Below are positions 20,215 through 62,371 of a DNA stretch of 64,000 nt, in pieces; position 1 is the stretch's first letter, and every line of letters starts with the position of its first letter. The DNA is from Penicillus capitatus (lineage: Eukaryota; Plantae; Chlorophyta). Under the pieces are notes generated by a model. That model searched no databases. It had not been told where the DNA came from and worked only from the letters and a program-made list of their open reading frames with translations. A program made the translations under genes and the position numbers. The stretch lies in the NCBI GenBank assembly GCA_965649825.1, contig OZ287696.1:911101-975100 (forward strand), given 5' to 3'.

Positions 20215-20516
20215 TCATAAACATTGCGATGCAGATTCTGAGACGTGTCGATGAATACTAATCTGCCCTTGTACAACAAATACGCACCACTTTTGAGAGG
20301 ATGATGAAATGGAAGCGATACCTCCTCGCACTGAACACGACTCATTTGCGTCATCAATTGAACGACGTTTGTCAGAGAATGGTTTCGAGAGTCTTCTGCC
20401 ACTGAGATCGATAGACGTAGAACATTCGGTGTTCCTTGTGGGGGGTCCAGAATCGGCCACGATTGAACAGCGTCGTTCAGAAAAGAGAGTGAGTGATCGT
20501 CTCCCGAAGGAATGGA
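20215..20516 (-). pseudogene. Decayed 3' fragment of the NIPA/ZC3HC1-like gene (intact copy at 30667-31854)
   Basis: ORF 20211-20552 SIPSGDDHSLSFLNDAVQSWPILDP matches SVPSTDDRSLSFLNDPVRSGPILNP; nucleotide match to 30520-30810 with frameshift. Confidence 0.85.
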
Positions 20517-20639
20517 AGTCGCCTTTCTATTCTTTCTGTCAAGACCATCCATACATCTTACCTACATAACCGAATTGTCTTTGTGAAGTGTCGAGATGTC
20601 CGACGATCAGTCTTGGTTAAAAACGAGGGTCATTGGGTG

Positions 20640-21910
20640 TTTGGGTTCAGAAAATGGATGGCTTTGAATCTTTGTATGACGATATCGATCGCGGACCGTT
20701 GGCCGTTCGACATTCAGCTTTAGGCAGCTTCGTGAGATCTGCGTCTATCGAACAACAGCTGCTTTCGAAAAGATCCACTGTCTGTCCGTCAATGTTGCCG
20801 ACCATCCCTTCGGCTAGCGTCTTGCCTAAGAAGACAGAGTGGTGATCTCCACATGACTCGGGTAGCGAGCAGTGGCGAACGAATGACACACAACGAGTGC
20901 CTCTCGTCGGCGGTGTAGTCACGGCCGGCAACACATGTCGATGCGTCAAAAAGAGCATAAGCCGGTTGGTTTCTCCGCAGACGGCCAAGTTCTCGTAGAA
21001 AGGCAGAGACTGCACAGAAAACCTTCGTCGCACACGACTACTTCTTGCGGGGCATCCTCACGATGGCTGTAGCTCCGAGTGTCGCAACGTCGACTGCGGA
21101 CGACAACAGACTCCATTCGGCCTCTTTCAGAATCACCACGCACATCCTTTCGATCGAAGAAAGACATCTGGCCGCTCTAGCTGCATGCAGCCTTTGCTTG
21201 ATCGCCATCGTTCGTGCCGTCTGGCATCCGGCTTATATTCGATATACTTCTCTTGTAGCATTACAGCGAGATCCGGATCTCCAAAGCACTGTTTCCCGAA
21301 CTCAGCCTCTTTCACTTACTGTTCTGGGTAAAAGCAAGTCACCGCCGGCTTCGCAGTCAGAAGAGTCTGCTCAGCCAGTGCAGACCGAGCGAATTTCATT
21401 GGCCGTCGCCAGCCTCAGCATCAAACACTCGACGCCGTGCGCGAACCGAACTAAAACCACGGGTCCACGGCCGTCTGGTTGTCGCAGATCAGCCGGCCGT
21501 TCGGTTCTGCCTTCCATGTCCGGAGGAGTTAGGTCAACCGACAACTCCAGAACCGATTCGCGTTACACCGTCGCAAGCGCTCTCGCGACGGCGTTCGCTG
21601 CAGAAACGTCCGAGACAGACGGCCGCCATCACGAAGAGTCCTTGCTGCTTCTTCGACAGAAAACCCCTGCATCTTCTCTCTGCTCAGGCGACGTCGAGCC
21701 GACTCGAGCGGTTCGCCGTTCGCAGATTCGCGCTGAAACGGTCGCGGAAACGCATGCGCGTTACATCTACTGTTACACCTAGAGGAGAACATCCGGACAT
21801 ACTGTAGACAATCTCACCTGTAAAAAACTCTGCACAGCTTACGAGAACGCTCTCCCGCTCGCATCTCGCGTCCCGACGACAGAATTCTGCGTTTCCGGCC
21901 CTTGGGCAGC
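20640..21910 (-). pseudogene. Possible decayed gene divergent from the Pro-rich gene (also at about 53630-54900)
   Basis: Minus-strand splice-like sites (TC|GTAAGC...CTAG, CA|GTAAGT) and protein-like stretches (EFGKQCFGDPDLAVMLQEKYIEYKPDARRHERW; SVQSLPFYENLAVCGETNRLMLFL) interrupted by stops; 1-bp indels between the copies; no family recognised. Confidence 0.3.
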
Positions 21911-22002
21911 CATCTCTTCGGCCGTCGGCGCATGCAGCCGCCGCCAAACGACCACAGTTAGCAGCCGCCAACCACATGCCGCGAACGACAACCGAGGCGG
22001 CC

Positions 22003-22008
22003 TATAAA
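22003..22008 (+). promoter_or_regulatory. TATA box of the Pro-rich cassette gene (copy 2 at 54995-55000)
   Basis: CCTATAAAGG about 100 nt upstream of ATG 22105, followed by a pyrimidine-rich leader. Confidence 0.5.
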
Positions 22009-22104
22009 GGTCCTGTCGAAGCGCCTTCCGCACTCGAGTTTCCGAGTTCTGTTTCTGCTTCCGGCGACCTTTGCTACTTTCTTCGACGACCGACTTCCAC
22101 GAAG

Positions 22105-23291
22105 ATGTCTGATACCAGAATGAACACCGAGGCCGATTACGGCTACCCAGACAAGCCGTAAGTCTTTTACCCACGCTTCGACGCGTCGCGCGCCTCAGAC
22201 CTCCTCGACTGCGGCGCTGGACGATCACCGTGCACATGGATGCGTCCAGCGCCACAATCCGAACGCATGCGGTCGCGTGCCTCCGAGAACGCGCAGCTGT
22301 CCTGTTCTTCGACAGGTCTCTAACCTGCGTCTGTGTTTAGGTTTTCGCAGGTCACGCTCCGGGAGGTCTTAAGCGACAGACCTCCCCGGGCGTTCGAGGG
22401 AATGGATGAGGCCGAGCGAAGGCAGTTGTATTGGGAATTAAAAGCCCAATCAACTGCCTTCAGGGGACAACAACTGCTCGAAGAGCAGGCCCCTCCTGTG
22501 CGGTTCGGTCCCAATAGGGACCAGACCGCACAGGCTCGGCCCGGACGGCGGGCGAGGGTCCTCTCTGCCGATGAGAGGAGAGCGCGGTTGGCCCAACAGG
22601 GCCAGCCTGCTGCTCCGCCGCCTCAGGCGCGCCCCGCATCGCCGCCTCCTGCAGCCTCCCAGCCACAGACATCATCGCCGCCGCCGCCGCCGCCAGCCGA
22701 GGCGTCACCAGCAGCCTCTCATCCGACAGCCCTGCCAGCGGCACCCCAGACGAGCGCGCCGCCGACCATGGAGTGGTCACCTGCGCAGCCAGCCACTCCT
22801 CATGTCCAACCTGCTGCGCCGCCTCCGGCATCATCACAGACGCCCAGTTCAGCCGCCATGGAGTGGTCCGCCTGTCCTTCCCCGCAGCCAACCCAGACGA
22901 TGTCCAATCCAACCACCCAGCCATTCAAGCCGCCGCTCTTCCCCCCTCGCCCGCAGGTGTTTTGCATACCTGCATCCCCTCCTCCTATCATCCCCTCACG
23001 TCTTTTTAAGTTTTCCTTCCCCTTTTTTCCCCCTCCCTTTCCTGCACGCACCTCCCAATACTCCCTACCTTCTCAACCTCCAATCCCCCCTCGTCCTTTC
23101 ATCCTTTCTGTCCGATATCCTGGCATCCCTCCCAGACCATACTTCTTATCTGGCGAGTGTGTGAGCTTGGGTCCTGCGATTCCTCAGCGCCTTTTCTTCC
23201 TATCAGGCGAATGTGTAAGTCACTTTTTTGTTTCCTTCTCTCTTTTGATGTGCTTTCTGTGTAGGTTTATGTTGAAGGTTGGTCTGCCTGA
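22105..23291 (+). CDS. Orphan Pro-rich protein, copy 1 (about 340-356 aa, 4 exons)
   Basis: Introns 22158-22198, 22316-22340 (or 22272-22350) and 23215-23264 give one frame ending ...FFLSGEC|VYVEGWSA*; synonymous-biased divergence from copy 2. Confidence 0.8.
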
Positions 23292-23740
23292 GGGCATCTT
23301 TCTCCACATTTTTGAACGCTGTTTTCTCTCTTTGCTGAAAAATTTTAAAAAAACAAAAAGATTCATGGGCTGTTTTCTTTTCTTCCTGTTTCTGCCAATC
23401 CACCTTCGCTTTGTTGTGGATGGCTGTGTTTGCTGTTTTTACGTGTTGGCTGTCAACAGCTCATCAGCTGTTTTGTACATGGAGCGTGTCGTTTCTTGAT
23501 CTGCTGTTTTGCTCGGCTGGAGGATGGAGACTGGGGTGTGCCACGTACTCTCTGTTTTTTACCTGGGATGGCTGCTAGCGTCGTTCTACTTGTCATTTTT
23601 GCTGATTTGGAGGCCGCCATGTCTATTTACCTGCTGTCTGGAGCTGCCACGTCCGATTTGGCGTTTTGATGCATAGAAACTGGAGTGTCCGACTCACTGT
23701 ATTGCTGCCTGGAGGATCCCATCTGCTGTCTTGCTGCTTG

Positions 23741-24010
23741 AAGCTGCCGTACCTCACCTGCTGCTGTGCTACTGGAGGCTGCCGTTTCTCACATGCCGCC
23801 TGACTGACCAGAGGCTGCCACACCTCACCTGCTGCTGTGCTACCAGAGGCTGCCATACCTCACCTGCTGCTGTGCTACTGGAGACTGCCGTTTCTCACAT
23901 GCCGCCTGACTGACTGGAGGCTGCCATACCTCACCTGCTGCTGTGCTACTGGAAGATGCTGTACCTCACCTGCTGCCTGACTGCCCGGAGGCTGCCTTGT
24001 CTTACCTGCT
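23741..24010 (+). repeat. Degenerate 35-36 bp minisatellite, about 8 units
   Basis: Unit like GCTGCCATACCTCACCTGCTGCTGTGCTACTGGAG. Confidence 0.85.
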
Positions 24011-24654
24011 TTCCGCTGCCCAAAAGATGCCATCTATTGATGTTCCCGTGCGGAGCTGCCGTGTCCGATCTGCTTATCTTACCGCCTGGAGACTGGAGTG
24101 TCCTAACATGCCGACTGCTCATCGAACGCTGCCGAGTCTCTCTACCCGATTCCTTGCCGACTGGAGGCTGCAGTTCTTTCTTTCTACCGTCTGCTGCCTG
24201 GAGACTTCCTGGTCTGTCTACCTGCTGCGTGGTGTGGATGGAGGCCGCAGTCGACCTCGTTCTACCTGCGACATCGCTGCCCAGAGGCCACAGTCGTTCT
24301 GCATGCAGTCTCGCTTCTTATGTGGGCCCAGTCGCCATACATGCCGCATTGCTTTAAAAGTCTGTGGTCGTTCTTACTGCTGCCGTACTGACAAGAAGAT
24401 GAGGAGTCTGTCTACCTGCCGCTTTACCATGGATGCAAGGCGACAGTCGCCTTCACTGTTGCCTTGGAGTCAGTGGATTCCGCAGTCACTCTACCTGCGA
24501 CCGCGATGCCCGGAGGCCACAGTCGTTCTGCATGCTGCCTTGATGTGAATGGAGGCCGCAGTCCTTCTACCCGCTGACCAGTTGCCCAGAGACCGTCGCC
24601 ACCCTACCTGTCGCCGTGCTGACTGTAAGATGTTGAGTCAGTCCACCTGCTGCC

Positions 24655-26382
24655 TTAACGATCATTGGAGGCGGCTCTCATCCTACCTGCTGCCTCCCTC
24701 GATGTGGATGCGAGGCGGCGGATGACTGCTGCTTCGACGAGAACTGGGGTCGCAGTTGACCTACCTGCCGCCTCAACGACAACTGGAGGCGGCAGGCGTT
24801 CTACTTGCTGCTCGCTGTGGATGCGAGGCGGCAGTCGACCTACCCTGCCTCCGCGAAGACAACTGGAGGCCGCAGTCGTCATACCTGCCGCAGAAGCCCT
24901 GCTTGCTGCCTCGCTGTGGATGCGAGGCAGCGGATGACTGCTGCCTCGACGAGAACTGGGGTCGCAGTTGACCTACCTGCCGCCTCAACGAGAACTGGAG
25001 GCGGCAGGCGTTCTACTTGCTGCCTCGCTGTGGATGCGAGGCAGCGGATGACTGCTGCCTCGACGAGAACTGGGGTCGCAGTTGACCTACCTGCCGCCTC
25101 AACGAGAACTGGAGGCGGCAGGCGTTCTACTTGCTGCCTCGCTGTGGATGCGAGGCGGCAGTCGACCTACCCTGCCTCCGCGAAGACAACTGGAGGCCGC
25201 AGTCGTCATACCTGCCGCAGAAGCCCTGCTTGCTGCCTCGCTGTGGATGCGAGGCAGCGGATGACTGCTGCCTCGACGAGAACTGGGGTCGCAGTTGACC
25301 TACCTGCCGCCTCAACGAGAACTGGAGGCGGCAGGCGTTCTACTTGCTGCCTCGCTGTGGATGCGAGGCAGCGGATGACTGCTGCCTCGACGAGAACTGG
25401 GGTCGCATTTGACCTACCTGCCGCCTCAACGAGAACTGGAGGCGGCAGGCGTTCTACTTGCTGCCTCGCTGTGGATGCGAGGCAGCGGATGACTGCTGCC
25501 TCGACGAGAACTGGGGTCGCAGTTGACCTACCTGCCGCCTCAACGAGAACTGGAGGCGGCAGGCGTTCTACTTGCTGCCTCGCTGTGGATGCGAGGCAGC
25601 GGATGACTGCTGCCTCGACGAGAACTGGGGTCGCAGTTGACCTACCTGCCGCCTCAACGAGAACTGGAGGCGGCAGGCGTTCTACTTGCTGCCTCGCTGT
25701 GGATGCGAGGCAGCGGATGACTGCTGCCTCGACGAGAACTGGGGTCGCATTTGACCTACCTGCCGCCTCAACGAGAACTGGAGGCGGCAGGCGTTCTACT
25801 TGCTGCCTCGCTGTGGATGCGAGGCAGCGGATGACTGCTGCCTCGACGAGAACTGGGGTCGCAGTTGACCTACCTGCCGCCTCAACGAGAACTGGAGGCG
25901 GCAGGCGTTCTACTTGCTGCCTCGCTGTGGATGCGAGGCGGCAGTCGACCTACCCTGCCTCCGCGAAGACAACTGGAGGCCGCAGTCGTCATACCTGCCG
26001 CAGAAGCCCTGCTTGCTGCCTCGCTGTGGATGCGAGGCGGCGGATGACTGCTGCCTCGACGAGAACTGGGGTCGCAGTTGACCTACCTGCCGCCTCAACG
26101 AGAACTGGAGGCGGCAGGCGTTCTACTTGCTGCCTCGCTGTGGATGCGAGGCGGCAGTCGACCTACCCTGCCTCCGCGAAGACAACTGGAGGCCGCAGGC
26201 TCCCTACTTGCCGCAGTCGTTGTACCTGCAGCCTCGCTGTGGATGCGAGGCGGCAGTCGACCTACCCTGCCTCCGCGAAGACAACTGGATGCGGCTGTCG
26301 CACTACCTGCGACCTCGATGCCCGGATGCCGCAGTCCACCTACCTGTTGCCTTGCCGAGTTGTGAGGCGGCTATCGCCGACC
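24655..26382 (+). repeat. Tandem stem-loop array, copy 1 (114-bp and 99-bp higher-order units built from 35-40 bp hairpin modules)
   Basis: About ten 114-bp units and 4-5 99-bp units; stems CTGCCGCCTC/GAGGCGGCAG and GCTGCCTCGC/GCGAGGCAGC. Confidence 0.95.
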
Positions 26383-26619
26383 GTAAGTCCTTCTTTCGCA
26401 AGCAGACGGTCTCTCACTCTTTAATTGCATACAGACTTTGTGGCGTAGTGGGCATCTGTTCTTCCCTGCATCACAACTCAAAACTTTTCACCTGTCGGCA
26501 CACTATTTGAAAGAGTGACATTTTACAAGCTTCTTTGATATATACCGTTGTAACGCTTTCAACAGTACAACACACTTGTCTAACACTATTTCCTACTGAA
26601 CCACACTTTTAAAAAGGAG

Positions 26620-27880
26620 TGACATTTACAAGAATTGTCTAAGCAGTCGATTCCTGTTTTCGTTACATAGCGTGTTATATGATTCGACGACAGAACGCCA
26701 AGTCATCAACTCCTCCCTGACTGTTGTCGAGGCTATCGCAAGACGCCCTTCGTCGTTAACTCGTCGCCGTCTGCATGGCCAAGTCGTCTGAAATCCACAG
26801 ATCTCTTCGGTGCACTCGCCTCCGCCGACAGATAGAATGGACGCCGACTCCGACAAGGCGCCGTCGACTAAGGTGCCTAAATTCATCAAGCACGGCGCGG
26901 CGTACGACCGTGGATAACTGCTCAGTTCTTCGTATATCGAACAGTTGCCTATTGGCACTGCTAACGCCACAATGCCGTGCTTCTCTTCGAAAGGCTTGCA
27001 CTCAAGCGTCGGGTGTTCAAGTAGTGCACGAGATGTCGGAAGCGTGGCGGCGGATGAGAATAGACTTATGGCGGTTGTGTCAACGAAGTGTCGACGGGAG
27101 AGTGGAAAACGAGAACCCTGTCGATGTGCCGGACACTTGAGCAGTTAGCTTGCCCTTTCAGCTTGCAAGTCGATTCGCAACGCCGCAGACCATGTGTCGT
27201 TTGGTACTGGCTACGGCACGCCCCCCCCCCCCCGAGGCAAAATAAAAAGTCGCTGCTTGTCATCGACGGCAGATGACCGCCTCGAGGACATGTGCGGGAG
27301 ACGAACGATCCTCTCTTCGAACTTTCTACATAATGCGTCGCCTAAAACTCGGCGTTGACTCTTCCCGCCGTTCGAGGAGTGCACGCATCAGAATCCGTGC
27401 CGCTTTTCAGGGTAAAGAAGCGCGTGCATACATTGGCATCACGTACGCGCCGTTTTCGTTCTATCGCCTTGGTAACTTTGCAGTTCAAGCAAAGAGAAAC
27501 AGACGAGGAACATGGAAGACCCCGACGGAAGACGAACAAATGTAAGAACAATGCGAACTCTAAAGTGGCCGTAGTCGCAGAGGCGGTCGAGAGCAATGCC
27601 TCCAGGAATGCTTGCTTGTTTGATAGCTTAGATGACGTGAACTCGCTGCTGTTGTGCCATTCGATGCATCGATCCGCTTTTTTACTGCTCGCACTTTAGG
27701 CGTATCTCTTCGATCTAGATGAACTGCCTCGCGACGACCCGCGTTACTCATGTTCGACGGACCCCTCTAACGAGTCCTGCACAATTGATCGCCATTCAGC
27801 CGTTCTAACAACGATATCGAGGTCGACGCCTCTCTGCGTCTCGTTTGTTAGATTTCGGTAGATCGTCAGAATGACATTTG
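26620..27880 (-). pseudogene. Diverged shared segment, possibly a decayed minus-strand gene (partner about 60245-61510)
   Basis: Alignable peptides LSTVVRRAVLDEFRH versus CPSTVLRQDVLAEFRN; minus-strand TGTAA at its 3' end in both copies; frames broken in both. Confidence 0.3.
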
Positions 27881-27892
27881 CACTCGCGTTAA

Positions 27893-29067
27893 ATGGAGAC
27901 GCCTGTCCGTACGCCAATGTCGCCGCCATGGGAAGAAGATCTCGACAGAGAGCGCGTCTACAAAGCGACTTCTGCTCTTTGTCAGCACGTCCAAGAACAG
28001 AAAGAAAAATCACAAAACATCCTTGAAGACGATGCAGAGTGGATCTTCCTCGTAATCCTGAAAATATCACCTCTCGGGCTGAATGTGTCTGTATCAGTTT
28101 GTGCGCTATAAGTCGATTCCGGCCATCTTCCGAAAGTTCCCCGTTCAACTGTACTCTCCTCGAACTGCCACTAGAATGACATCTTATCTTCTACTTGTTC
28201 CTCAGGAAACTGTTCAAGTCCTTCTGGAATACGGAGGATTTTCGAATCTGCCTTATTATGCACGACAAGAATGCAGGTGCGTTTAACGCAGATGAATGCA
28301 ATAGTAAAGACGGTGGATAAAAGGAAGGAGAGTCAAGACGGCACGCGAACTCCTCATACCAGATCGTGTGACAGAAGTGCTGAGCGTTCAGGACATCCGA
28401 AGGCAATACGGCGATGACTCCTCGAAGAGAGAGCTGTGCAAATCGTATGATCTGTTTCTGCTGGAGAGATCTATACGAGATATCTCTAACGAGCTCCTCG
28501 GTGCCAATCTCCTGGCAGATCGACGTTCGCTGACGAAACGCTGCAGGTGGTCGTTTCGTGGAGATGAAGAAGGTTCCCGTGCTCGTTCATCTGACCCGTC
28601 ACCCCGAAGTGTGGATCAAATCGATCGAAGCCGAGAAAAGCAGGACACAGATGTTCTGTCACGTGCATCAGGAGAGGAGCATCAGGTACCTCTGCCCCCG
28701 TGATCATCTTTATGACGCGTTATAGTTTGACAGGGTTGGCAGGAGTTCGTTCACCGCGGAAGAGCTGACAGAGAATATATTCTCCGTCGTGCAGCAGATC
28801 GTTGAGCATCCGGAATTGGAGAACTGGCAGGACATCATGCAGCTTTACGTCTGTACAGGCAGAAGCGTCCGTTTGCCTGTCTATCAAACATTTCCCGATC
28901 CGCCGCAGATCGAAGAGGGGAAAGAGGAGGACAGATCGTCGCGATGGGGAAGAAAACGACACGCAAAGAGCCGACGATCACATCAGCTGACGAATCGTCT
29001 GATGGGAGCATTCGCAGCAACATATCCGCCTGAACCTTTGCCTGTCTCAAAGAACCCTGACAGCTAG
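27893..29067 (+). CDS. RSL1D1: Ribosomal L1 domain-containing protein (RSL1D1/Cic1/Utp30-like)
   Basis: RERVYKATSALCQH...EWIFL, KRELCKSYDLFLLERSI, QIVEH..LENWQDIMQLYVCTGRSVRLPVYQ; TGTAA at 29093. Confidence 0.8.
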
Positions 29068-29512
29068 CTTAGATGCTGATTGAGTGCGTTTGTGTAACTC
29101 CAGTAGTCGTATTGGAGAGAGCTCTAGATTCATGATCGACTCCTCGCTGAACTCGAGAACGCGATATGAAGACTTCCAAGAATCGCTGCACAAGAGGTTG
29201 CCAGTTTCGACTCCGAAAGCAGAGGTCAATGAGGAAGACCCTCGGCATCAGCAATTTCATGACTTCATTATTGACTGCACTAGATCCGTGTCGACAAACC
29301 ACGTTGCCTCTCGTTTGCTTATCCCCCGAGCACACTTCGGAGACAGTCAGAACATTCACTTGAAACGTCTGAACTGGTGACGACTCTTTGGCGGCGTCGA
29401 AGGATGCACGGACACTCTTGCCTCACGCCTGACAACTTCGACGAGAGTATTCATCTTGTGACACGTGTCATTAAACGAAGGCAGTGTTTATTCGGTGTCC
29501 AAGTGTCAAAGG

Positions 29513-29872
29513 ATGTATGACTTTTGTTTTACGTATCCCTATGCGGTGCTTCTGGCGCTGGGAGGATTAATTGGCTACGCGACCAAAGGCAGCACCGGCT
29601 CACTCGGAGGCGGTGTCGGCTCAGGCGTCGTACTTTATCTCCTCGCGCATATCAGTCTGCGCTACTACCATGCCGGGAAGCTGTGGAAGACCGGAACATT
29701 CCTTTCCCTGGTGGTCTCGGTTGCGCTGACCGTGGTCATGGCTTTGCGCTACCAGGAAAGCGGGAAGCTGTTTCCTGCTGGGGTGTTCACAGTTCTCTGT
29801 GGATCGATGTCGCTGTTCTATGTCTGGTCCCTTTTCCTGGGACCTCAGCCAAAGAAGAAGACGAATAAATAG
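29513..29872 (+). CDS. TMEM14/FAX (fatty acid export 5/6-like) small membrane protein
   Basis: MYDFCFTYPYAVLLALGGLIGYATKGSTGSLGGGVGSG...RYQESGKLFPAGV; TGTAA at 29909. Confidence 0.9.
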   Translation: MYDFCFTYPYAVLLALGGLIGYATKGSTGSLGGGVGSGVVLYLLAHISLRYYHAGKLWKTGTFLSLVVSVALTVVMALRYQESGKLFPAGVFTVLCGSMSLFYVWSLFLGPQPKKKTNK

Positions 29873-30520: not shown

Positions 30521-30666
30521 GGGACTGTGATGGAGGCGAGCAGTGAGACGTATCAATGAATTCCTTCGCGCAACAAGTTTTGCCATTTTTGAGAGGATGA
30601 TGGACTGGAGGTGGCACCTCCTCGCACCGAACACCATTCCTTTGCGTCGCCAAACGACGATGCTAG

Positions 30667-51730: not shown

Positions 51731-53391
51731 ATGACCCAAACGAACGGCACCACGGCATCCTTCTTCGACGCGGTCTACGCGGACGAGCGCGTGTTCAAGT
51801 ACTACACGTCCGGCGAATGGAAAACGTCGACCTCGGGGAAGCACGTACCGATCAAGAATCCCGCAACGGAAGACGTGGCATTCCATGTCCAAAGTAATGC
51901 CTTCAGAGGGTCAAGGCAATAGAGATGCGAAGGTGTGCAGGTTGCACGCGTGAGGAAGTCGACGCGCTGTTTACGGAAGCGCAGTCGGTTCAGGAGTCAT
52001 GGTCAACGACGCCGCTCTGGAAACGCGCGGAGTTGATGCATCGCGCGGCGACATTGCTGCGAACGAATGCCGAGCCGATTGCAGACATCTTGGTGCAAGA
52101 AATCGCCAAGGGACGCAAAGATAGTGTCACCGAGGTCATCCGTTCGGCGGATTTGGCAGACTACTCGGCAGAAGAGGGCATGCGCGTACTGGGAGAGGGG
52201 AAGATGATGCAAGCGGATTCGTTTCCCGGACACGAACGCAACAAGATCTGCCTCGAAGTGCGTGTCCCGCTAGGCGTGGTGCTCTGCATTCCTCCCTTTA
52301 ACTATCCGGTCAATCTGGCGATGTCCAAAATTGCACCAGCACTCTTGGCGGGGAACGCAGTCGTGCTGAAGCCACCGACTCAAGGATGCGTCTCTGCCAT
52401 TCACATGATGCACTGTTTTCACGAGGCTGGATTCCCTAAGGGGCTGATTCATGTGGTAACGGGACGAGGATCGGAGATCGGTGACTACTTGACAACGCAT
52501 CCCCTCTGCAACTGCATCTCGTTCACGGGCGGCGATACCGGTGCGGATCGAAAACACCGTTTTCATTGTATGGCAAGAAGAGTGGCTTTGTTACAGGGAT
52601 CGAAATCTCGAAGAAGGCAGGAATGATACCTTTGCAGATGGAACTCGGTGGCAAAGATGTCTGCATTGTCTGCGAAGATGCCGATCTGGATCTCGCCATC
52701 AAGCACATCATCAAAGGTATCCAGAGCTGTGATCATGGATGGCTTGTTAGGAGATGCCGTTATAGGTGGGTTCTCTTACAGCGGGCAGCGTTGTACGGCA
52801 GTTAAGGTGGTGCTGGTGCTGGACTCTGTGGCAGATGAGGTGGTGGAACGTGTGACGGAAGGTGTTCAGAAGCTCAGTGTTGGAAATCCAGAAGATGACT
52901 GCTTCATCACGCCCGTCATCTCAAAATCTTCTGCAGATTTTATCGAAGGACTGATTGAAGATGCCAAAACAAAAGGCGCCGAATGCAAGACGGTGCACAA
53001 ACGCGCCGGCAACTTGATCTATCCTCTGGTGCTGGATAAAGTGACAGCAGATATGAGAATCGCATGGGAAGAGCCATTTGGTCCTGTCCTGCCTTTCATT
53101 CGCGTGCCAGATGTGGATAGCGCTGTCCAGCACTGCAATAAGAACAATGTGGCTCTTCAGGGATGCATTTTTACTCAGAACATCGACCGTGCCATTACTC
53201 TCAGCGATCGTATGAAGACAGGGACTGTTCAGATCAATGCCGCTCCTGCACGTGGTCCAGATCATTTTCCGTTCCAGGGATTCCGGGATAGCGGCATTGG
53301 ATCGCAAGGCGTTCAGAACAGTCTACGTTTGATGACGAAAATCAAGTCGACGGTTATCAATCTTCAGCAGCCAACTTATTCCCTCGGTTGA
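51731..53391 (+). CDS. GAPN: Non-phosphorylating NADP-dependent glyceraldehyde-3-phosphate dehydrogenase (ALDH11)
   Basis: IPPFNYPVNLAMSKIAPALLAGN, KPPTQG, ISFTGGDTG, LQMELGGKD, FSYSGQRCTAVK, WEEPFGPVLP, ARGPDHFPFQG. Confidence 0.97.
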
Positions 53392-55096
53392 GAGATGGCA
53401 TAACAGCTACCCTGTACCTTCTCAGCGGCAATTCAATTATTTCTTATCGCATTCTTGTTGTTGTTATAAAGAGTGAATGGCACCTCGTTGTCTTGGATGA
53501 ATAATGGAAGTCGCCTTTCTATTCTTTCTGTCAAGACCATCCATACATCCCACCTGCATAACCAAAGTGCCTTTGTGAAGTGTCGAGATGTCCGACGATC
53601 AGTCTTGGTTTAAAAACGAGGGTCATTGGGTGTTTGGGTTCAGAAAATGGATGGCTTTGAGTCTTTGTATGACGATATCGATCGCGGACCGTTGGCCGTT
53701 CGACATTCAGCTTTAGGCAGCTTCGTGAGATCTGCGTCTCTCGAACAACAGCTGCTTTCGAAAAGAACCACTGTCTGTCCGTCAATGATGCCGACCATCC
53801 CTTCGGCTAGCGTCTTGCCTAAGAAGACAGAGTGGTGATCTCCACATGACTCGGGTAGCGAGCAGTGGCGAACGAATGACACACAACGAGTGCCTCTCGT
53901 CGGCGGTGTAGTCACGGCAGGCAGCACATGTCGATGCGTCAGAAAGAGCATAAGCGGGTTGGTTTATCCGCAGACGGCCAAGTTCTCGTAGAAAGGAAGA
54001 GACTGCACAGAAAACCTTCGTCGCACACGACTACTTCTTGCGGGGCATCCTCACGATGGCTGTAGCTCCGAGTGTCGCAACGTCGACTGCGGACGACAAC
54101 AGACTCCATTCGGCCTCTTTCAGAATCACCACGCACATCCTTTCGATCGGAGAAAGACATCTGGCCGCTCTAGCTGCATGCAGCCTTTGCTTGATCGCCA
54201 TCGTTCGTGCCGTCTGGCATCCGGCTTATATTCGATTACTTCTCTTGTAGCATTACAGCGAGATCCGGATCTCCAAAGCACTGTTTCCCGAACTCAGTCT
54301 CTTTCACTTACTGTTCTGGGTAAAAGCAAGTCGCCGCAGGCTTCGCAGACAGAAGAGTCTGCTCAGCCAGTGCAGACCGAGCGAATTTCATTGCCCGTCG
54401 CCATCCTCAGCATCAAACACTCGACGCCGTGCGCGAACCGAACTAAAACCACGGGTTCACGGCCGTCTGGTTGTCGCAGATCAGCCGGCCGTTCGGTTCT
54501 GCCTTCCATGTCCGGAGGAGTTAGGTCAACCGACAACTCCAGAACCGATTCGCGTTACACCGTCGCAAGCGCTCTCGCGACGGCGTTCGCTGCAGAAACG
54601 TCCGAGACAGACGGCCGCCATCACGAAGAGTCCTTGCTGCTTCTTCGACAGAAAACCCCTGCCTCTTCTCTCTGCTCAGGCGACGTCGAGCCGACTCGAG
54701 CGGTTCGCCGTTCGCAGATTCGCGCTGAAACGGTCGCGGAAACGCATGCGCGTTACATCTACTGTTACACCTAGAGGAGAACATCCGGACATACTGTAGA
54801 CAATCTCACCTGTAAAAAACTCTGCACAGCTTACGAGAACGCTCTCCCGCTCGCATCTCGCGTCCCGACGACAGAATTCTGCGTTTCCGGCCCTTGGGCA
54901 GCCATCTCTTCGGCCGTCGGCGCATGCAGCCGCCGCCAAACGACCACAGTTAGCAGCCGCCAACCACATGCCGCGAACGACAACCGAGGCGGCCTATAAA
55001 GGTCCTGTCGAAGCGCCTTCCGCACTCGAGTTTCCGAGTTCTGTTTCTGCTTCCGGCGACCTTTGCTACTTTCTTCGACGACCGACTTCCACGAAG

Positions 55097-56275
55097 ATGT
55101 CTGATACCAGAATGAACACCGAGGCCGATTACGGCTACCCAGACAAGCCGTAAGTCTTTTACCCACGCTTCGACGCGTCGCGCGCCTCAGACCTCCTCGA
55201 CTGCGGCGCTGGACGATCACCGTGCACATGGATGCGTCCAGCGCCACAATCCGAACGCATGCGGTCGCGTGCCTCCGAGAACGCGCAGCTGTCCTGTTCT
55301 TCGACAGGTCTCTAACCTGCGTCTGTGTTTAGGTTTTCGCAGGTCACGCTCCGGGAGGTCTTAAGCGACAGACCTCCCCGGGCGTTCGAGGGAATGGATG
55401 AGGCCGAGCGAAGGCAGTTGTATTGGGAATTAAAAGCCCAATCAACTGCCTTCAGGGGACAACAACTGCTCGAAGAGCAGGCCCCTCCTGTGCGGTTCGG
55501 TCCCAATAGGGACCAGACCGCACAGGCTCGGCCCGGACGGCGGGCGAGGGTCCTCTCTGCCGATGAGAGGAGAGCGCGGTTGGCCCAACAGGGCCAGCCT
55601 GCTGCTCCGCCGCCTCAGGCGCGCCCCGCATCGCCGCCTCCTGCAGCCTCCCAGCCACAGACATCATCGCCGCCGCCGCCGCCGCCAGCCGAGGCGTCAC
55701 CAGCAGCCTCTCATCCGACAGCCCTGCCAGCGGCACCCCAGACGAGCGCGCCGCCGACCATGGAGTGGTCACCTGCGCAGCCAGCCACTCCTCATGTCCA
55801 ACCTGCTGCGCCGCCTCCGGCATCATCACAGACGCCCAGTTCAGCCGCCATGGAGTGGTCCGCCTGTCCTTCCCCGCAGCCAACCCAGACGATGTCCAAT
55901 CCAACCACCCAGCCATTCAAGCCGCCGCTCTTCCCCCCTCGCCCGCAGGTCTTCTGCATACCAGCATCACCGCCTCCTTTAATCCCCTCCCGTTTGTTTA
56001 AGTTTTCCTTCCCTTTTTGCCCTCCTCCCTTCCCTCTACGCACTTCTGTGTTTTCCTTTCCCTCTCCACCTCCAATTCCCCCGCGCCCTTTCATCTTGTC
56101 AGTAGGCCCCCTTGGTATCCCTCCCCGACCGTTTTTCCTATCCGGCAATTGTGTGCCCATCGGCCCCGCTATCCCTGAGCGACTTTTCTTCCTTTCGGGA
56201 GAATGTGTAAGTCACTCTTTGCTTTTTCTCTCTGTTAGCCTGTTTTCTGTGTAGGTTTATCTCAAGGATTGGTGA
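55097..56275 (+). CDS. Orphan Pro-rich protein, copy 2
   Basis: Same exon structure as copy 1; last intron 56207-56254; ends ...FFLSGEC|VYLKDW*. Confidence 0.8.
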
Positions 56276-56554
56276 GTCTGAGGGCCTTTCTCTCTTTTTG
56301 ATGCTGTTTTTATTGTGGGATAAAAATAAAAAAACAAAAAGATCTAGGGGCTGTTTTCCTTTCTTGCTGTTTTGCCATTCCACCTTCGCTTTGTTGTGGA
56401 TGGCTGTGTTTGCTGTTTTCATATGGGCCGTCATAATCTCATAAGTTTTTTGAAACATGGAGGGTGTTGTTTACTGATCTGCTGTTTTGGTCGCCCTGGG
56501 CTGGAGTATCTGATCTGCCGCGTCTGATTTGGCGTTTCAATGACTAGAGATCGC

Positions 56555-56835
56555 TGCCCTGTCTCACCCGCTGCTGTGCTGACTGGAGGATGCCCTGTCT
56601 CACCCGCTGCTGTGCTGACTGGAGGATGCCCTGTCTCACCCGCTGCTGTGCTGACTGGAGGATGCCCTGTCTCACCCGCTGCTGTGCTGACTGGAGGATG
56701 CCCTGTCTCACCCGCTGCTGTGCTACTGGAGCTTTCCTATCTCACCTGCTGCCCGGAGGATGCCCTGTCTCACCTGCTGCCCGGAGGATGCCCTGTCTCA
56801 CCTGCTGCCCGGAGGATGCCCTGTCTCACCTGCAG
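56555..56835 (+). repeat. Young minisatellite: about 5 x 36 bp followed by about 3 x 28 bp
   Basis: Exact units TGCCCTGTCTCACCCGCTGCTGTGCTGACTGGAGGA at 56555, 56591, 56627 and 56663; TGCCCTGTCTCACCTGCTGCCCGGAGGA at 56761 and 56789. Confidence 0.95.
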
Positions 56836-57439
56836 CCGTCTCACTGGAGGATGTCACCTGTTGATCTTCCCGTGCTGAACTGTCGTGTCCTACCTGCTTG
56901 TCTTACCGCCTGGAGACTGGAGCGTCCTAACATGCCGTCTGCTCATCGAACGCTACCGAGTCTCTCTACCTGGTTCCTTGCCGACTGGAGGCTGCAGTTC
57001 TTTCTTTCTACCGTCTGCTGCCTGGAGACTTCCTGGTCTGTCTACCTGCGGCGTGGTGTGGATGGAGGCCGCAGTCGATCTCGTTCTGCATGCAGTCTCG
57101 CTGTGGATTGGGGCGCAGTCGCCATACATGCCGCATTGCTTTAAAAGTCCGTGGTCGTTCTTACTGCTGCCGTACTGACTAGAAGATGAGGAGTCTGTCT
57201 ACCTGCCGCCTTACCATGGATGCAAGGCGACAGTCGCCTTCACTGTTGCCTTGGAGTCAGTGGATTCCGCAGTCACTCTACCTGCGACCGCGATGCCCGG
57301 AGGCCACAGTCGTTCTGCATGCTGCCTTGATGTGAATGGAGGCCGCAGTCTTTCGACCCGCTGACCAGTTGCCCAGAGACCGTCGCCACCCTACCTGTCG
57401 CCGTGCTGACTGTAAGATGTTGAGTCAGTCCACCTGCTG

Positions 57440-60112
57440 CCTTAACGATCATTGAAGGCGGCTCTCATCCTACCTGCTGCCTCCCTCGATGTGGATGCGA
57501 GGCGGCGGATGACTGCTGCTTCGACGAGAACTGGAGCCGCAATCGCTATACCTGCCGCCTCAACGACAACTGGAGGCGGCAGGCGTTCTACTTGCTGCCT
57601 CGCCGTGGATGCGAGGCGGCGGATGCCTACTCTGCCTCCGTGAAGACAACTGGAGGCTGCAGTCGTCATACCTGCCGCAGACGCCCTGCTTGCTGCCTCG
57701 CTGTGGATGCGAGGCGGCGGATGACTGCTGCCTCGACGAGAACTGGGGTCGCAGTTGACCTACCTGCCGCCTCAACGACAACTGGAGGCGGCAGGCGTTC
57801 TACTTGCTGCCTCGCTGTGGATGCGAGGCGGCTGTCGACATACCTGCCTCTGTGAAGATAACTGGAGGCGGCAGTCGTCCTACTTGCCGCAGACAATTAT
57901 CGGCGGCCGTAGTCGCCCTACTTGCTGCCTCGCCGTGAATGCGAGGCGGCGGATGCCATACCTGTTCCGTCGCCGACAAGATGCCGCAGTCGCCATACCT
58001 GCCCCCTCGAAGACAAATTGAGGACGCGGTCGTCCGACCTGTTCCGTCGCCGACAAGATGCCGCAGTCGCCATACCTGCCCCCTCGAAGACAAATTGAGG
58101 ACGCGGTCGACCTAACTGCTGCCTCGCCGTGGATGCGAGGCGGCGGATACTCTACCTGCTGTTGTCTTGACGACAACAGGATGCGTCAGTCGTCTTACTT
58201 GCCGCAGACAATTATCGGCGGCCGCAGTCGCCCTACTTGCCGCCTCGCCTTGGATGCGAGGCGGCCGATGCCATACCTGCCGCCGTGACGACAACTGGAG
58301 GCGGCAGTCGCCATACCTGCGGCATCGCTGCCTTGAGGACGCAGACGTCCACTTGCTGCCTCGCCGTGGATGCGAGGCTGCGGATGCCTTACCCTGCCGC
58401 AGACGACTACTGGAGGCGGCAGGCGCCCTACGTGCCGCAGACGATCATTGGAGGCCGCAGTCGCCATACCTGCGGCATCGCTGCCTTGAGGACGCAGACG
58501 TCCACTTGCTGCCTCGCCGTGGATGCGAGGCGGCGGATGCCTTACCTGCCGCAGACGACAACTGGAGGCGGCTCTCGTCCTACTGGCCGCAGACGATCAT
58601 TGGAGGCCGCAGTCTATCTATCTGCTGCCTCGCCTTGGATGCGAGGCGGCGGATGCATTACCTGCCGCCTTGACGACAACTGGAGGCGGCAGGCGCCCTA
58701 CGTGCCGCAGACGATCATTGGAGGCCGCAGTCGCAATACCTGCGGCATCGCTGCCTTGAGGACGCAGACGTCCACTTGCTGCCTCGCCGTGGATGCGAGG
58801 CGACGGATGCTCTACCTGCTGCCGCCTTGACGACAACTGGAGGCGGAGGATGCCATACCTGCCGCCGTGACGACAACTGGAGGCGGAGGATGCCGGACAT
58901 GCCGCCGTGACGACAACTGGAGGCGGAGGATGCCGGACATGCCGCCGTGACGACAACTGGAGGCGGCAGGCGTCCTACTTGCCGCAGTTTACCTACCTGC
59001 TGCCCTGCCGCAAATCCGAGGCGGCGGATGCCCTGCCCTGCCTCCGTGAAGACAACTGGAGGCCCGCGGTCGCTCAACTCTGCCTCCTCGAAGACAACTG
59101 GAGGACGCAGTCGTCCAACTTGCCGCCTCGCCGTGGATGCGAGGCGGCGGACGACTTACCTGTTCTGTCGCCGCTATAAAGCCGCTGTCCCCCTACTTGC
59201 TGCCTCGCCGCATATGCGAGGCGGCGGATGCCTTACCCTGCCGCAGACGACTACTGGAGGCGGCAGGCGCCCTACGTGCCGCAGACGATCATTGGAGGCC
59301 GCAGTCGCAATACCTGCGGCATCGCTGCCTTGAGGACGCAGACGTCCAACTTGCCGCCTCGCCGTGGATGCGAGGCGGCGGACGACTTACCTGTTCTGTC
59401 GCCGCTATAAAGCCGCTGTCCCCCTACTTGCTGCCTCGCCGCATATGCGAGGCGGCGGATGCCTTACCCTGCCGCAGACGACTACTGGAGGCGGCAGGCG
59501 CCCTACGTGCCGCAGACGATCATTGGAGGCCGCAGTCGCAATACCTGCGGCATCGCTGCCTTGAGGACGCAGACGTCCACTTGCTGCCTCGCCGTGGATG
59601 CGAGGCGGCTGTCGACATACCTATTCCGTCGCCGCCAAGAAGCCGCAGTTGCTATACTTGCTGCCTCGCCTTAGATGCGAGGCGGCGGTCGTCCGACCTG
59701 TTCGGTCGCCGTCAAGATGCCGCAGTCGACTTACCTGCTGCCTCGCCGTGGATGCGAGGCGGCGGATTCTCTAATTGCTGCCTCGACGACAACTGGAGGC
59801 GGCAGGCGCCCTATTTGCCGCTGTCGCCTTACTCGCTGCCTCGCCGCATATGCGAGGCGGCGGATGCCTTACCTGCTGCTGCCTTGACGACAACTGGATG
59901 CGGCAGTCGTCTCCTTGCCGCAGACGATCATCGGCGGCCGTAATCGCCCTACTTGCTGCCTCGCCGTGGATGCGAGGCGGCGGATGCTCTACCTGCTGCC
60001 GTGAAGACAACTGGAGGCGGCAGGAGCCCTACCTGCCTCGAACACGATCATCGGACGCCAAGGTCGTCCTACCCTGTCGCCTTGCCGAGATGCGAGGCGG
60101 CTGTTGCCGACT
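57440..60112 (+). repeat. Tandem stem-loop array, copy 2 (longer, more loop types; local 40-, 77- and 231-bp periods)
   Basis: Same stems as copy 1; 231-bp duplication at 59115/59346; 77-bp duplication at 57961/58038. Confidence 0.95.
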
Positions 60113-61519
60113 GCAAGTTCTCTTTTCGTGAATTTGCATCTCATTACTCTTTCTCTGCCGACTCTGTTGCGTGGTGCATTTTGTCCTTCGCGAATCACTG
60201 TTCTATCAGTGTTTCTATCGACATTACACTTTTTAAAGAAGGAATGACATTTTTACAAGCTTTGTAAACAGTCGAGTTCCATTCCTTTAACATTTATCCA
60301 GCGCGAGTTGCGTTTTGACGACGGAACGTTATATGTCGACGCCTTCCTGACTGTCGCCGAGAGCCTTGTTCGGGAGCGTTTCATCGCTAAGCTCTTTGCC
60401 ATCTGCTGAGGGAAGATGCATGGCGTCCAGAAATCTCTTTCTTGCATTCGCCTCCTGTAGACAGACGAAGACGACGGCTACTCCGTGCAGGCTCCCTCGA
60501 CCCGGGTTCCGAAACTCAGCAAGCACGTCTTGTCGTAGGACCGTGGACGGACATTTGCTGAGGATCTCGCGAGTCGCACTGCCGCCTGTCCGTAACACTG
60601 CGATGTTTCGCTCCTGTTGAGAGGCTTGGCACTCGTGTACCGGGTGTCCTTGCAGCGCCTGAGATCTCAGAAGCGTGCCTGCGGATGAGAATTGACTCGT
60701 GGCGGTCGTGTCGACGAAGTGGTGATAGGAGAGCGAGGGACGAGAGCCTCGTCGGCATGCCGGACTCTCAAGCAGCTACAGGGGTCGCCCTTTCAGCTTA
60801 CTAGCCGATTCGAAACGGCATGGGTGTCACTTAGAACGGCCGACAGAACGATCGCCCGTGGCAAAACAGAACGTCGTTGCTTGTCGTTTACAGCAGACGA
60901 CGCGCTCTAAAGAGGTGCACCGGACGAACGATCTCCTCTTTGAACTGTCTACATAGTGCACCTTGCGCTATTGGGAGTAAGCTCATTCCGTCGCCTGATG
61001 AGTGAATGCATTACAATCCGTGCAGCTGTTCGGGACAAAGAAGAACGTGACGCGCGCATTGGAATGACGAACGCGCCGTTTTTATTTCACCGCCCTACCG
61101 ACTTCGCAGTTCAAGCGAAGATCGGCGGAGGAGGAACACGGAAGACTTTGACCAAAGCCATGCAGATACAAGAAGAGCGTGAACCGTGGAGAGGTCACAG
61201 TCGTGAGACGCCGTCGATCGCCAAGCCTCCAGGAACGCGTGTTCGACAGCTCAGATGGCGTTAACTGACTGCTGCTGTGACATTCGATGCATCGAGCGTC
61301 ATCTCTGCTGCCCTACATTCAAACGTGGTTCTCTGATCTGGGCGATTCGTCTCGCCACAATCCGCGTTGCTCGTGTTTAACTGATCCTTAACGAAGCCTC
61401 TTTATTCGCTCGCCTTTCATCTTCTCTGACAACGATGTTGAGGTCTATTCGTCTCCGCGTGTCGTTCGTTCGGTGTCAAGAAACGGATTGGCGGAATGGC
61501 ATCTGACCGCTAGTTAAGT

Positions 61520-62085
61520 GATGACGCCTGTCCGAACGCCGATGTCGCCGCCGTGGGAAGAAGATCTCGGCAGCGGGCGCGTCTTCAAGGCGACCTTCGC
61601 CCTTTGTCAGCACGTCGGAGACAGAAATGTGAATCAGACTACATCCCCGAAGACGATGCAGAGTGGATCATCCTCGTGAGCCTAGGGGAAATCTCGCTTT
61701 CTGAGCTGAATGTGTTTGCATCCTGCTCCTCGGGAAACTAACTAATAAACCCTTCTGCAACACGTCCGTTTCCGAATCCGCCTCATCGTGCGCGACAAGG
61801 ATGCAGGCCACCTCAGCGCAGTACAGCGAAATGATTGCGATGAGAGCGGTGGATGAAGGGAAAGAGCGTCAAGACGGCGCACTAGCTTACGGCGAGGGAA
61901 GTGTTGAGTGTACTGGACGTCCGAAGGCAACACCGCGACGACTCCTCGAAGAGAGACCTCTGTAAACCGTGTGGTCTGTTTTTGCTGGAGAGGTCTGTCG
62001 GGACGCCTCTAACGAGCTCCTCGGTGCGAATCTCCTAGCAGATCAACGTCCGTTGATGAGGAGCTCCAGGTGTACCGGTATCATT
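61520..62085 (+). pseudogene. RSL1D1 pseudogene (5' part, internal deletions, unprocessed)
   Basis: ACGCCTGTCCGAACGCCGATGTCGCCGCCGTGGGAAGAAGATCTCG matches 27899 onward; frameshifts; intron-derived sequence retained. Confidence 0.9.
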
Positions 62086-62139
62086 GCCCGACGACAGCTT
62101 CGACGGTCGGTTTACGGCATCTTGTAGCGTGCTTCCCTA

Positions 62140-62371
62140 AACGGAGACAGTGTTCACTCGGTGTCCAAGTGCCAAACAAATGATGCATGAATACTGTTCA
62201 ACGTATCTCTATGCGGTGCTGCCGGCGTTGGGCGGATTCATCGGTTTAGCGACCGAAGGCTGGAATGGCTCGCTCGGAGGCGGTGTCGGTTCTGGCGCCG
62301 TGCACAATCTTCCTGCGCACATCAGTCTGCTCTCATACCGTGCCGGGGAGCAGTGGAAGACAGGAACAGTC
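62140..62371 (+). pseudogene. Truncated TMEM14/FAX copy, forming the 5' half of a 154-codon chimeric ORF
   Basis: [38 protein letters not shown]...WKTGT versus [38 protein letters not shown]...WKTGT; homology stops at about 62371. Confidence 0.88.

Follow-up and report, generated by a model that had tools for sequence, protein, structure and literature searches.

Why is the same unit of 9-10 kb present twice, in unrelated surroundings, within one short stretch of an algal chromosome? The stretch analysed here, referred to as the window, is 64,000 nucleotides of Penicillus capitatus (GenBank assembly GCA_965649825.1, contig OZ287696.1, positions 911,101 to 975,100 of the forward strand). From left to right the unit consists of an upstream block with a TATA box, a spliced gene encoding a Pro-rich protein (called the family gene below), a T/A-rich 3' region, a minisatellite, an array of hairpin-forming repeats, a 1.3-kb block, and the two genes RSL1D1 and TMEM14. 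The original prediction for this locus regarded the whole as one unit that had moved while carrying host genes. The results described here make a different history probable: the two units in the window are paralogues from a family that is confined to one lineage and expands in tandem, and they arose by an old segmental duplication and were partly overwritten by recent gene conversion.

Self-BLAST of the window gives four matching stretches between copy 1 and copy 2, all on the + strand and in the same order: 20511-23515 with 53503-56493 (95% over 3,011 bp), 26979-28095 with 60610-61722 (71%), 28374-28549 with 61898-62072 (82%), and 29472-29698 with 62138-62368 (79%). The tandem arrays between the first and second of these stretches show heavy cross-matching. 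The left ends, 20511 and 53503, agree to the single base. The same orientation, the exact left end and the common module order were all predicted and are confirmed by this comparison, and every listed module from the upstream block to TMEM14 is found in both copies. The predicted contexts are also correct: copy 1 lies at the junction of the ClpS and NIPA genes and copy 2 at the 3' end of GAPN (ClpS and NIPA are identified by Pfam, and the identity of the GAPN gene upstream of copy 2 is confirmed too). The segment of copy 1 is 9.86 kb long (20502-30359, + strand) and lies between two host duplicates, A and A', i.e., between the convergent ClpS and NIPA genes. Copy 2 starts 112 bp past the GAPN stop codon (53391). 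Of the cassette extents first given, the left ends are exact, while position 62368 marks a secondary deletion and not the original right end of copy 2.

Two public samples provide the relatives used for comparison. In ENA ERZ25074695, the window locus is found as contig ctg340460 (L005; 36x, 844 kb), and 9x contigs of the same sample (L001, L003, and L004) belong to a close relative. ERZ26696514 contains a sister species (150x), whose NIPA gene is 86% identical to that of the window with a synonymous divergence (dS) of ~0.5.

The identity between copy 1 and copy 2 is a mosaic. The left 2.4 kb is 97-100% identical; the 3' coding end of the family gene, the 1.3-kb block, and the RSL1D1/TMEM14 part are 71-82% identical. 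There are 26 differences in 20511-21465. The following 1,493 bp (21466-22958, + strand) has one difference from 54458-55950 and is the most recent conversion tract, covering the promoter, exon 1, intron 1, and the 5' two thirds of exon 2. From 22959 on, the divergence is ~22%. The right edge of the homogenised region is therefore located inside coding sequence, and the homology of older divergence stops at the start of the minisatellite. The two parts of the unit also have different phylogenies. In the right part, represented by the 1.3-kb block, copy 2 joins L001 at 14% divergence, and copy 1 differs from copy 2 by 31% and from its closest counterpart in the sister species by 33-34%. In the left part, the two window copies diverge by 0-3%, and L001 is ~25% away from either. 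Such a conflict between left and right trees, together with nested tracts of 100%, 97%, and ~75% identity, is the signature of interlocus gene conversion; both a sharp tract of near identity and phylogenetic incongruence are found here. The exact left end is explained in the same way, because conversion halts where homology ends, at the old breakpoint 20511/53503.

The duplication beneath these tracts is old. In the C-terminal coding part of the family gene, copy 1 and copy 2 differ with dS 0.96 and a nonsynonymous divergence (dN) of 0.126 (dN/dS 0.13, range 0.13-0.2). Therefore, both family genes are old, intact, and constrained. The dS between TMEM14 of copy 1 and that of the sister species (L008) is 0.54, and orthologous genes of the two species have values of 0.48-0.52. 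Together with the right-part tree, these values date the divergence of the two window copies to about the time when the species separated.

The window units are two of many. A 572-kb contig of the ERZ25074695 sample (41x) has at least five more family members, and the match of its coverage with the 36x of L005 suggests that it comes from the window's genome. At L009, two family genes are 7.7 kb apart, each with its upstream block, conserved 3' element, and array. The 9x relative has several tandem units, each with one of two layouts. One runs from the upstream block, gene, array, and post-array block to an RSL1D1 remnant, a TMEM14 remnant, and a trailing block named X; the other begins identically and continues with COG4 fragments (COG4_C and COG4_m), which lie between family units at L001 4391-4960, L003 13259-13918, and L004 2916-3209. 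In the sister species, units repeat every ~16.4 kb (L002 1710-3145 and 18088-19523), each with protein-kinase genes (L007, L008, and L010). This is a tandem amplification separate from that of the window's lineage. Passengers thus vary by unit (pieces of RSL1D1, TMEM14, NIPA, and ClpS; COG4 fragments; kinase genes), and so does the start of the homology on the left, which is 20511, ~20970-21061, or ~21430 depending on the copy. On copy number and ends, which the original prediction proposed to check, the loci read here show many family copies with ends that differ among units and no fixed termini. The outcome is essentially the plain segmental duplication against which that prediction was set, although the family copies far exceed two.

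Could one of the copies, or the identical 1.5-kb tract, come from metagenome assembly? The window and L005 are identical over 20920-23290 and 30041-42013, and their ~140 differing positions (1-2%) occur only in 23290-30040, where the array of L005 is also ~244 bp longer. The region is thus either hard to assemble or polymorphic; conversion, noise in the consensus of a repeated region, or the presence of two haplotypes or strains could each account for the differences. An assembly artefact is nevertheless hardly credible. The junctions of copy 1 are identical in L005. The architecture of copy 2 (gene, array, RSL1D1 remnant, and X) appears independently in L001, L003, L004, and L010. Finally, most of the length of the two copies is 20-30% divergent, which rules out a collapsed or duplicated contig end.

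On both sides of copy 1 lies host DNA that is present as a direct duplication, which the original prediction had not reported. The left duplicate A (20060-20501, 442 bp) is 78% identical to the right duplicate A' (30360-30795) by self-BLAST. A starts in the last ClpS intron and continues through the final ClpS exon, which is functional (stop at ~20212), and ~160 bp of intergenic DNA to a frameshifted pseudo-copy of the terminal 129 bp of the NIPA coding sequence (CDS). In A' the roles are reversed: its pseudo-copy of the final ClpS exon is frameshifted, and past the intergenic DNA NIPA has a working 3' end. Past 20501, an ungapped match of 22/38 counted by eye hints at ~35 more bases, although local alignment there is not above shuffles. 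The spliced ClpS model matches Pfam with E = 7.8e-19 and the NIPA-like gene (zf-C3HC / NuBaID; 30667-32013, - strand) with E = 3e-27. A protein search with NIPA returned the window itself, the sister species, and one 46%-identical match on a short contig.

In the sister species, the orthologous locus (L006) runs from NIPA to ClpS through one A and without the cassette, so the empty site that the original prediction proposed to look for exists. It is apparently not the ancestral state. Where the cassette tail meets A' (30359|30360), cluster copies of the sister species (L008) and of the 9x relative (L001) have the same junction to the base. These cluster copies extend into NIPA past A' (L001 17560-18113 corresponds to 30584-31138, and L008 18520-18623 to 31776-31869), and pieces of NIPA move with them. 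Therefore the ClpS/NIPA arrangement predates the species split, and the cluster copies, including copy 2 of the window, were copied from the ClpS/NIPA site. The sister species has probably lost its copy at this site by recombination between A and A'. In a three-way comparison of A, A', and the sister copy (B), the left half of the intergenic part has 15 positions with A=B, 6 with A'=B, and 2 with A=A'; at the NIPA end, A'=B is found 12 times and the other two patterns 6 and 8 times. Overall, the distances among A, A', and B are star-like. This pattern fits the expected trace of an A x A' crossover, to which selection on the two exons contributes too.

The same flanks invite another explanation. 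A circular intermediate carrying the cassette and ~440 bp of homology to the ClpS/NIPA junction could integrate at the native junction in the manner of Campbell, which would produce A and A' as direct repeats, and the reverse reaction would remove it cleanly. The insert is indeed flanked by direct repeats of target sequence, a related genome has a clean single-copy site, and the left end of copy 2 is 10 bp from the end of A. The tail|A' junction of the cluster copies is the one expected in a popped-out circle or in a tandem unit, and tandem units able to pop out are present in relatives. We regard this route as unlikely. The cluster copies hold NIPA well beyond A' (up to 31138 in one case, and 31776-31869 in the other) and hence look derived from the chromosome and not from a circle with 442 bp of homology. 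Moreover, excision by A x A' recombination requires no step in which a circle integrates.

A further alternative stays closest to the original prediction: a non-autonomous mobile element (Helitron-like, Pack-TIR-like, or of unknown class) would have captured RSL1D1 and TMEM14 and been mobilised in trans. Two copies in unrelated contexts with an exact left end in common, an apparent empty site in the sister species, and host passenger genes aboard all agree with it. Its probability is nonetheless very low when the ends are considered. As the original prediction had already noted, recombination enzymes and terminal inverted repeats (TIRs) are absent: the window and cassette open reading frames (ORFs) tested with Pfam have no reverse transcriptase (RT), DDE, HUH, or tyrosine-recombinase domain, and in both copies the strongest inverted pairing of the ends does not exceed that of shuffles. 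A TIR DNA transposon or a Pack-MULE would be defined by TIRs and a short target-site duplication, and its inverted ends are lacking here. Long terminal repeat (LTR) retrotransposons have LTRs derived from the element itself, gag/pol genes or a primer-binding site and polypurine tract, and a target-site duplication of 4-6 bp. The 442-bp repeats seen here are host DNA, single in L006, and the ORFs tested have no RT, integrase, or gag domain (the primer-binding site, the polypurine tract, and a short target-site duplication were not searched for). Helitrons start with 5'-TC and end with 3'-CTRR behind a subterminal GC-rich hairpin; they insert between A and T without target duplication, and autonomous ones encode Rep/helicase. 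By eye, the last 70 bp before 30359 contain no GC-rich palindrome and no clear CTRR, no dedicated Helitron scan having been made. The ORFs tested have no HUH or helicase domain, and the flanking duplication and right ends that differ among copies do not agree with a Helitron either. Note that transposases and integrases leave target duplications of 2-30 bp, far below 442 bp.

The breakpoints lead to the same answer. Copy 2 starts 112 bp past the GAPN stop and originally ended in NIPA, and right ends now lie in the TMEM14 CDS (copy 2) or in COG4 or kinase genes (other units), so that breakpoints are arbitrary with respect to genes, as in segmental duplication. Left ends differ among paralogues, and the exact left end of the window copies is accounted for by conversion up to the duplication boundary. 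Variable unit ends, breakpoints inside genes, and the lack of LTR, TIR, or Helitron termini together leave a discrete mobile element unsupported. Of the original claim, it stands that the block of gene, array, RSL1D1, and TMEM14 has acquired a second location by copying; its reading as a discrete element, selfish or non-autonomous, is not supported.

Under the preferred reading, segmental duplication followed by gene conversion, the history is as follows. Copy 1 lies between the convergent ClpS and NIPA genes, with the duplicated 442 bp of their junction on either side. From this site at least 11 kb, starting at 20511 and including the gene, the array, RSL1D1, TMEM14, A', and part of NIPA, was copied beside block X downstream of GAPN. 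The copying gave rise to the copy-2 lineage, whose age is about that of the sister-species split (dS about 0.5). The passengers of copy 2 subsequently decayed and were partly deleted in the window's genome. In the sister species, no copy is present at the ClpS/NIPA site, and the cluster copies have kept functional RSL1D1 (L010) and TMEM14 (L008). Recently, homogenisation between the window copies has taken in the promoter and, from its 5' side, two thirds of the family gene, reaching the old left breakpoint. The copying probably proceeds by ordinary host recombination and errors of replication, such as non-allelic recombination, unequal crossing-over, and gene conversion between paralogues.

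The state of the passenger genes is consistent with this history. In copy 1, the RSL1D1-like gene (27893-29067, + strand; ribosomal L1 domain) has Pfam Ribosomal_L1 pieces in two frames with its exon structure partly resolved. It is the sole copy with an ATG in the window's lineage, and its exon 1 has 85% protein identity to the sister-species gene in L010. TMEM14 of copy 1 (29513-29872, + strand) is intact (Pfam Tmemb_14, E = 3e-21), and dN/dS between it and L008 is 0.16. The RSL1D1 and TMEM14 of copy 2, which had been listed as carried genes, turn out to be pseudogene remnants. RSL1D1 (61518-62072, + strand) has GTG in place of ATG, a frameshifting 1-bp deletion in exon 1, and a gap of ~860 bp in which the last exons are gone. 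TMEM14 (62138-62368, + strand) is cut within the CDS after approximately codon 65. Decay of redundant passengers in one of two copies is the behaviour expected of a segmental duplication. L001, the orthologue of copy 2, still has a full TMEM14 ORF (dN/dS 0.45, against 0.16 for L008) and pieces of ClpS and NIPA. In the sister species, a complete RSL1D1 with ATG is found in the cluster unit directly before block X (L010), i.e., at the position of window copy 2, and an intact, constrained TMEM14 in a different unit (L008). The working RSL1D1 and TMEM14 of the window's genome are thus those of copy 1, with the cluster copies decayed, and the two sister species have functional RSL1D1 and TMEM14 at different loci. 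This is a case of reciprocal retention.

What is the gene that is copied so often? The family gene of copy 1 (22105-23291, + strand) encodes 317 amino acids in three exons (22105-22157, 22341-23214, and 23265-23291, the last preceded by a 50-nt intron). That of copy 2 (55097-56275, + strand) encodes 315 amino acids in an intact frame according to its gene model. Its C-terminal third, 71-81% identical in DNA to copy 1, is under purifying selection, judging from the substitution rates given above. The product has a basic helical N-domain, a Pro-rich middle with MEW motifs, and C-terminal repeats of the PPIPPRPF type. Homologues have in common the N-domain motif ...VTLREVLG.RPPRAF...AERE.LYW.LKAQTTA.RGQ...PPVRFGPNR...RRARVLS..RRARLAQ, the MEW/MDWE..PSP motif, the PPIPPRPF-type repeats, and a TGT|GTAAGT donor. 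In an alignment of eight copies, this donor is followed by an intron of 48-50 nt and a last exon of 5-9 codons, and the splice sites and the short last exon are kept across paralogues. In an AlphaFold (AF2) model, two helices form in the N-domain and the remainder is disordered (mean pLDDT 54). There is no signal peptide and no sign of a surface antigen. One could guess that the protein is a disordered adaptor with SH3/WW/EVH1-like proline motifs.

The family gene was first described as an orphan, and it proves to be a member of an unnamed multicopy family. Pfam has no family for it at E <= 0.1. A protein search gave 18 related ORFs, and 17 homologues were counted in addition, all unnamed and without precomputed Pfam domains. 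An exhaustive profile search of 1.8 billion representative proteins gave 25 clusters at 50% identity, all from metagenome contigs, and a scan of JGI metagenomes gave no relatives. Pro-rich candidates saturated the word-indexed protein search to the point that even the ORF of the window itself was missed, so the family size that it gives is a lower bound. With the 88-residue N-domain alone, the same type of search returned nothing even though members share identical stretches of 17 residues; the profile search was used instead.

Downstream of the gene, the T/A-rich 3' region (23292-23720, + strand; 77-83% identical to relatives by BLAST) contains the most conserved non-coding element of the unit. 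This element of ~40 nt, approximately TGCCA(T)TCCACC..CGCTTTG.TGTGG.TGGCT, is located just before the minisatellite at ~23390-23430 and recurs at ~56370-56410, L008 ~11800-11850, and L009 ~11100-11160 and ~18900-18960. It is almost invariant and better conserved than the adjoining DNA in an alignment of eight copies from three genomes. Tandem Repeats Finder (TRF) then places a minisatellite of 35-bp units with a CTGGAGGC core at 23723-24010 in copy 1 and one of 36-bp and 28-bp units at 56555-56837 in copy 2 (both + strand). The hairpin array of copy 1 (about 24600-26420, + strand; TRF) has units of 38-40 bp with 10-bp stems and higher-order repeats of 114 and 327 bp; that of copy 2 (about 57400-60150, + strand; TRF) is more heterogeneous. 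Array units are generally GC-rich 38-42-mers with stems of 9-10 bp. Ten-bp arms with 8 or more pairs are found 16 times per kb of array compared with 3 times per kb in the remainder of the window, and the RNA folds more stably than dinucleotide shuffles (z = -11 for copy 1 and -4.1 for copy 2). A coding role of the arrays was also considered and rejected, since the long ORFs of copy 1 and copy 2 do not share a frame and units are no multiple of 3 in length.

At the 3' edge of the array begins the post-array block (26354-26520 in copy 1, + strand), which reads CC|GTAAGT, ~58 nt, ACAG, and then CACACTTTT..AAAGAGTGACA hairpins. It is conserved in a separate alignment of eight copies from three genomes and is 76-79% identical to the sister species by BLAST. 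The mini-intron-like signal (GTAAGT, ~58 nt including a CTCAC branch-like motif, ACAG) is found at 26410-26480, 60130-60200, and L008 ~15900-15990. Introns of ~50 nt occur elsewhere in ClpS (52 nt) and in the family gene (48-50 nt). The CACACTTTT..AAAGAGTGACA hairpins past the array (26500-26640) are related to perfect GTCACAC..loop..GTGTGAC hairpins found in A-rich DNA past the family stop codon at L008 11530-11760 and L009 ~11000-11080. Hairpins of this type may be 3'-end or terminator signals of the organism or a tiny palindromic repeat.

Is the gene always linked to the array? A downstream tandem repeat is present at every family gene read, in paralogues and in three genomes, which is the co-occurrence that the original prediction asked about. 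The large hairpin arrays, by comparison, are found only in the window's lineage. Behind the gene of the sister species come A-rich DNA with GTCACAC..GTGTGAC hairpins and a minisatellite of ~450 bp with 36-bp units (TGGAGGC core), and ~3.6 kb of unique DNA takes the place of the hairpin array. The TGGAGGC core is common to this minisatellite (L008 11860-12290), the window minisatellite, and the hairpin units. The 36-bp unit of the sister species also contains GCTGGTGG, which we take to be the E. coli Chi octamer and which is probably there by coincidence. Thus the linkage of the gene to a 3' tandem repeat is conserved, and arrays of kilobase size are a novelty of the window's lineage. The ~244-bp difference in array length between the two assemblies of one locus implies that the array is unstable. 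We infer that the hairpin arrays are minisatellites prone to expansion and not machinery that serves a mobile element. They may indicate how far conversion tracts reach on the right.

A more ambitious explanation gives the array a function. In such a two-part module, transcribed tandem stem-loops would act with the basic disordered protein, or the hairpin DNA, being fragile or recombinogenic, would drive duplication, conversion, insertion, and excision in cis through host recombination. If so, the locus would be a self-propagating gene-plus-repeat unit without an enzyme of its own. The constant presence of a 3' tandem repeat agrees with this, as do the leader element before the repeat and the GTAAGT...ACAG signal with a terminator-like hairpin after it. 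The bracketing by these signals would also allow the repeat to be part of a spliced transcript, without proving it. Paralogues of the same genome have different stems, CTGCCGCCTC/GAGGCGGCAG behind some and CTGGCGGCC/GGCCGTCAG behind others (the latter in the 42-bp hairpin-forming units of L009), and the repeat follows the right edge of the homogenised region. In imperfect stems of the sense strand, G:T exceeds A:C by 89 to 41 (98 to 98 in controls), a count confounded by the T>A skew of the arrays and the shared descent of units; the skew can account for much of the excess. Against the module, the ~450-bp minisatellite of the sister species shows that large arrays are dispensable for the family, and array length is not constant even between assemblies of one locus. 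Stems of 10 bp are short for known small-RNA pathways, and an Rfam scan of the whole window gave no match at the gathering score. The module is therefore judged improbable.

Several observations nevertheless weigh against segmental duplication and conversion as a full account. The first arrival of the cassette between ClpS and NIPA, with its 442-bp duplication, is not explained by simple unequal crossing-over and needs a replication or repair event (e.g., a template switch) or the integration of a circle with junction homology. The left breakpoint of the copy-2 lineage (20511) is only 10 bp from the end of A (20501), which is odd for independent random breaks. The different stem sequences behind different paralogues and the conserved leader element and splice-like signal that bracket the array both hint at more than a neutral minisatellite. 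Finally, no outgroup ClpS-NIPA locus was found, and the junction between GAPN and copy 2 is known from the window alone.

The processes invoked are individually well known. Gene transposition by duplication and reciprocal loss is described in an account of Arabidopsis (PMC2869320). As there, a multi-gene block is copied to a new site, one set of passengers decays, and sister lineages keep different loci. What differs here is that the block belongs to a tandemly amplifying family and that one copy is bracketed by a 442-bp target duplication and was later cleanly lost. Concerted evolution by interlocus conversion is reported for tandem gene arrays in protists (PMC1855330) and for ampliconic Y genes (PMC2997549). 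The nested tracts, the conflicting trees, and the tract end at the limit of homology are the same, whereas in the window homogenisation is limited to the promoter and, in the gene, to its 5' two thirds, and the C-terminal part is divergent yet constrained. Structure-forming DNA near gene families is likewise on record, as G-quadruplex motifs by Plasmodium variant genes (PMC5093961) and as the hairpin-type minisatellite MSY1 (PMC2599865). The window shares with these cases a structure-prone repeat of unstable length beside a family that is often duplicated or converted. It differs in having GC-rich 38-42-mers and a protein without the marks of a surface antigen, and the likeness implies no causal link. 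Gene-capturing transposons such as Helitrons and Pack-MULEs resemble the unit in that host genes are carried in a multi-kb unit without its own transposase, but here there are no defining termini, the boundaries vary, and the flanking duplication is host DNA. The unnamed Pro-rich family with its 3' element and lineage-specific hairpin arrays is a modest new lead.

The locus is a clean and datable case in which essential genes, RSL1D1 and TMEM14, change their chromosomal address without a transposon, riding with a fast-copying neighbour. It also shows how a long flanking repeat permits a clean loss that mimics an "empty site". For genome scans it carries a warning, since an exact common end with high identity may reflect conversion that stopped at an old breakpoint and not the terminus of a mobile element.

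The remaining parts of the unit are non-coding. The upstream blocks (20511-22104 with TATAAAG at 22003, and 53503-55096 with TATAAAG at 54995; + strand) are 97-100% identical to each other. In relatives, this block is 70-77% conserved from ~20970, 21061, or 21430 onward without a favoured reading frame. The 1.3-kb block of copy 1 (26603-27892, + strand), upstream of RSL1D1, is 71% identical to copy 2, where it forms 60063-61517 (+ strand) together with the post-array block, and 66-68% identical to the sister species. The upstream and 1.3-kb blocks were both tried as genes and rejected; all frames on both strands are equally conserved, and the tested ORFs have no Pfam match. Block X (62443-63997, + strand) trails copy-2-type units in relatives too. 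It is 81-86% identical to L001, L003, and L004 and 65% identical to L010 of the sister species, where it follows directly after RSL1D1. In L004, the next family unit starts 1.65 kb past block X.

The window's genome is intron-poor, has ~52% GC, and includes ClpS, GAPN, and alternative oxidase (AOX) genes. The neighbours of the two copies are ordinary genes, TRRAP/Tra1 (~12 kb with very few introns), alternative oxidase, MBOAT, and NSUN2, located at 40134-51892 (- strand), 39365-40081 (+ strand), and 12004-15991 (- strand). The sister species has them in the same order, with DNA identities of 84-88%. In intergenic DNA at 38950-39012, a perfect 33-bp direct repeat with an offset of 30 bp forms a short tandem repeat that is unrelated to the cassette.

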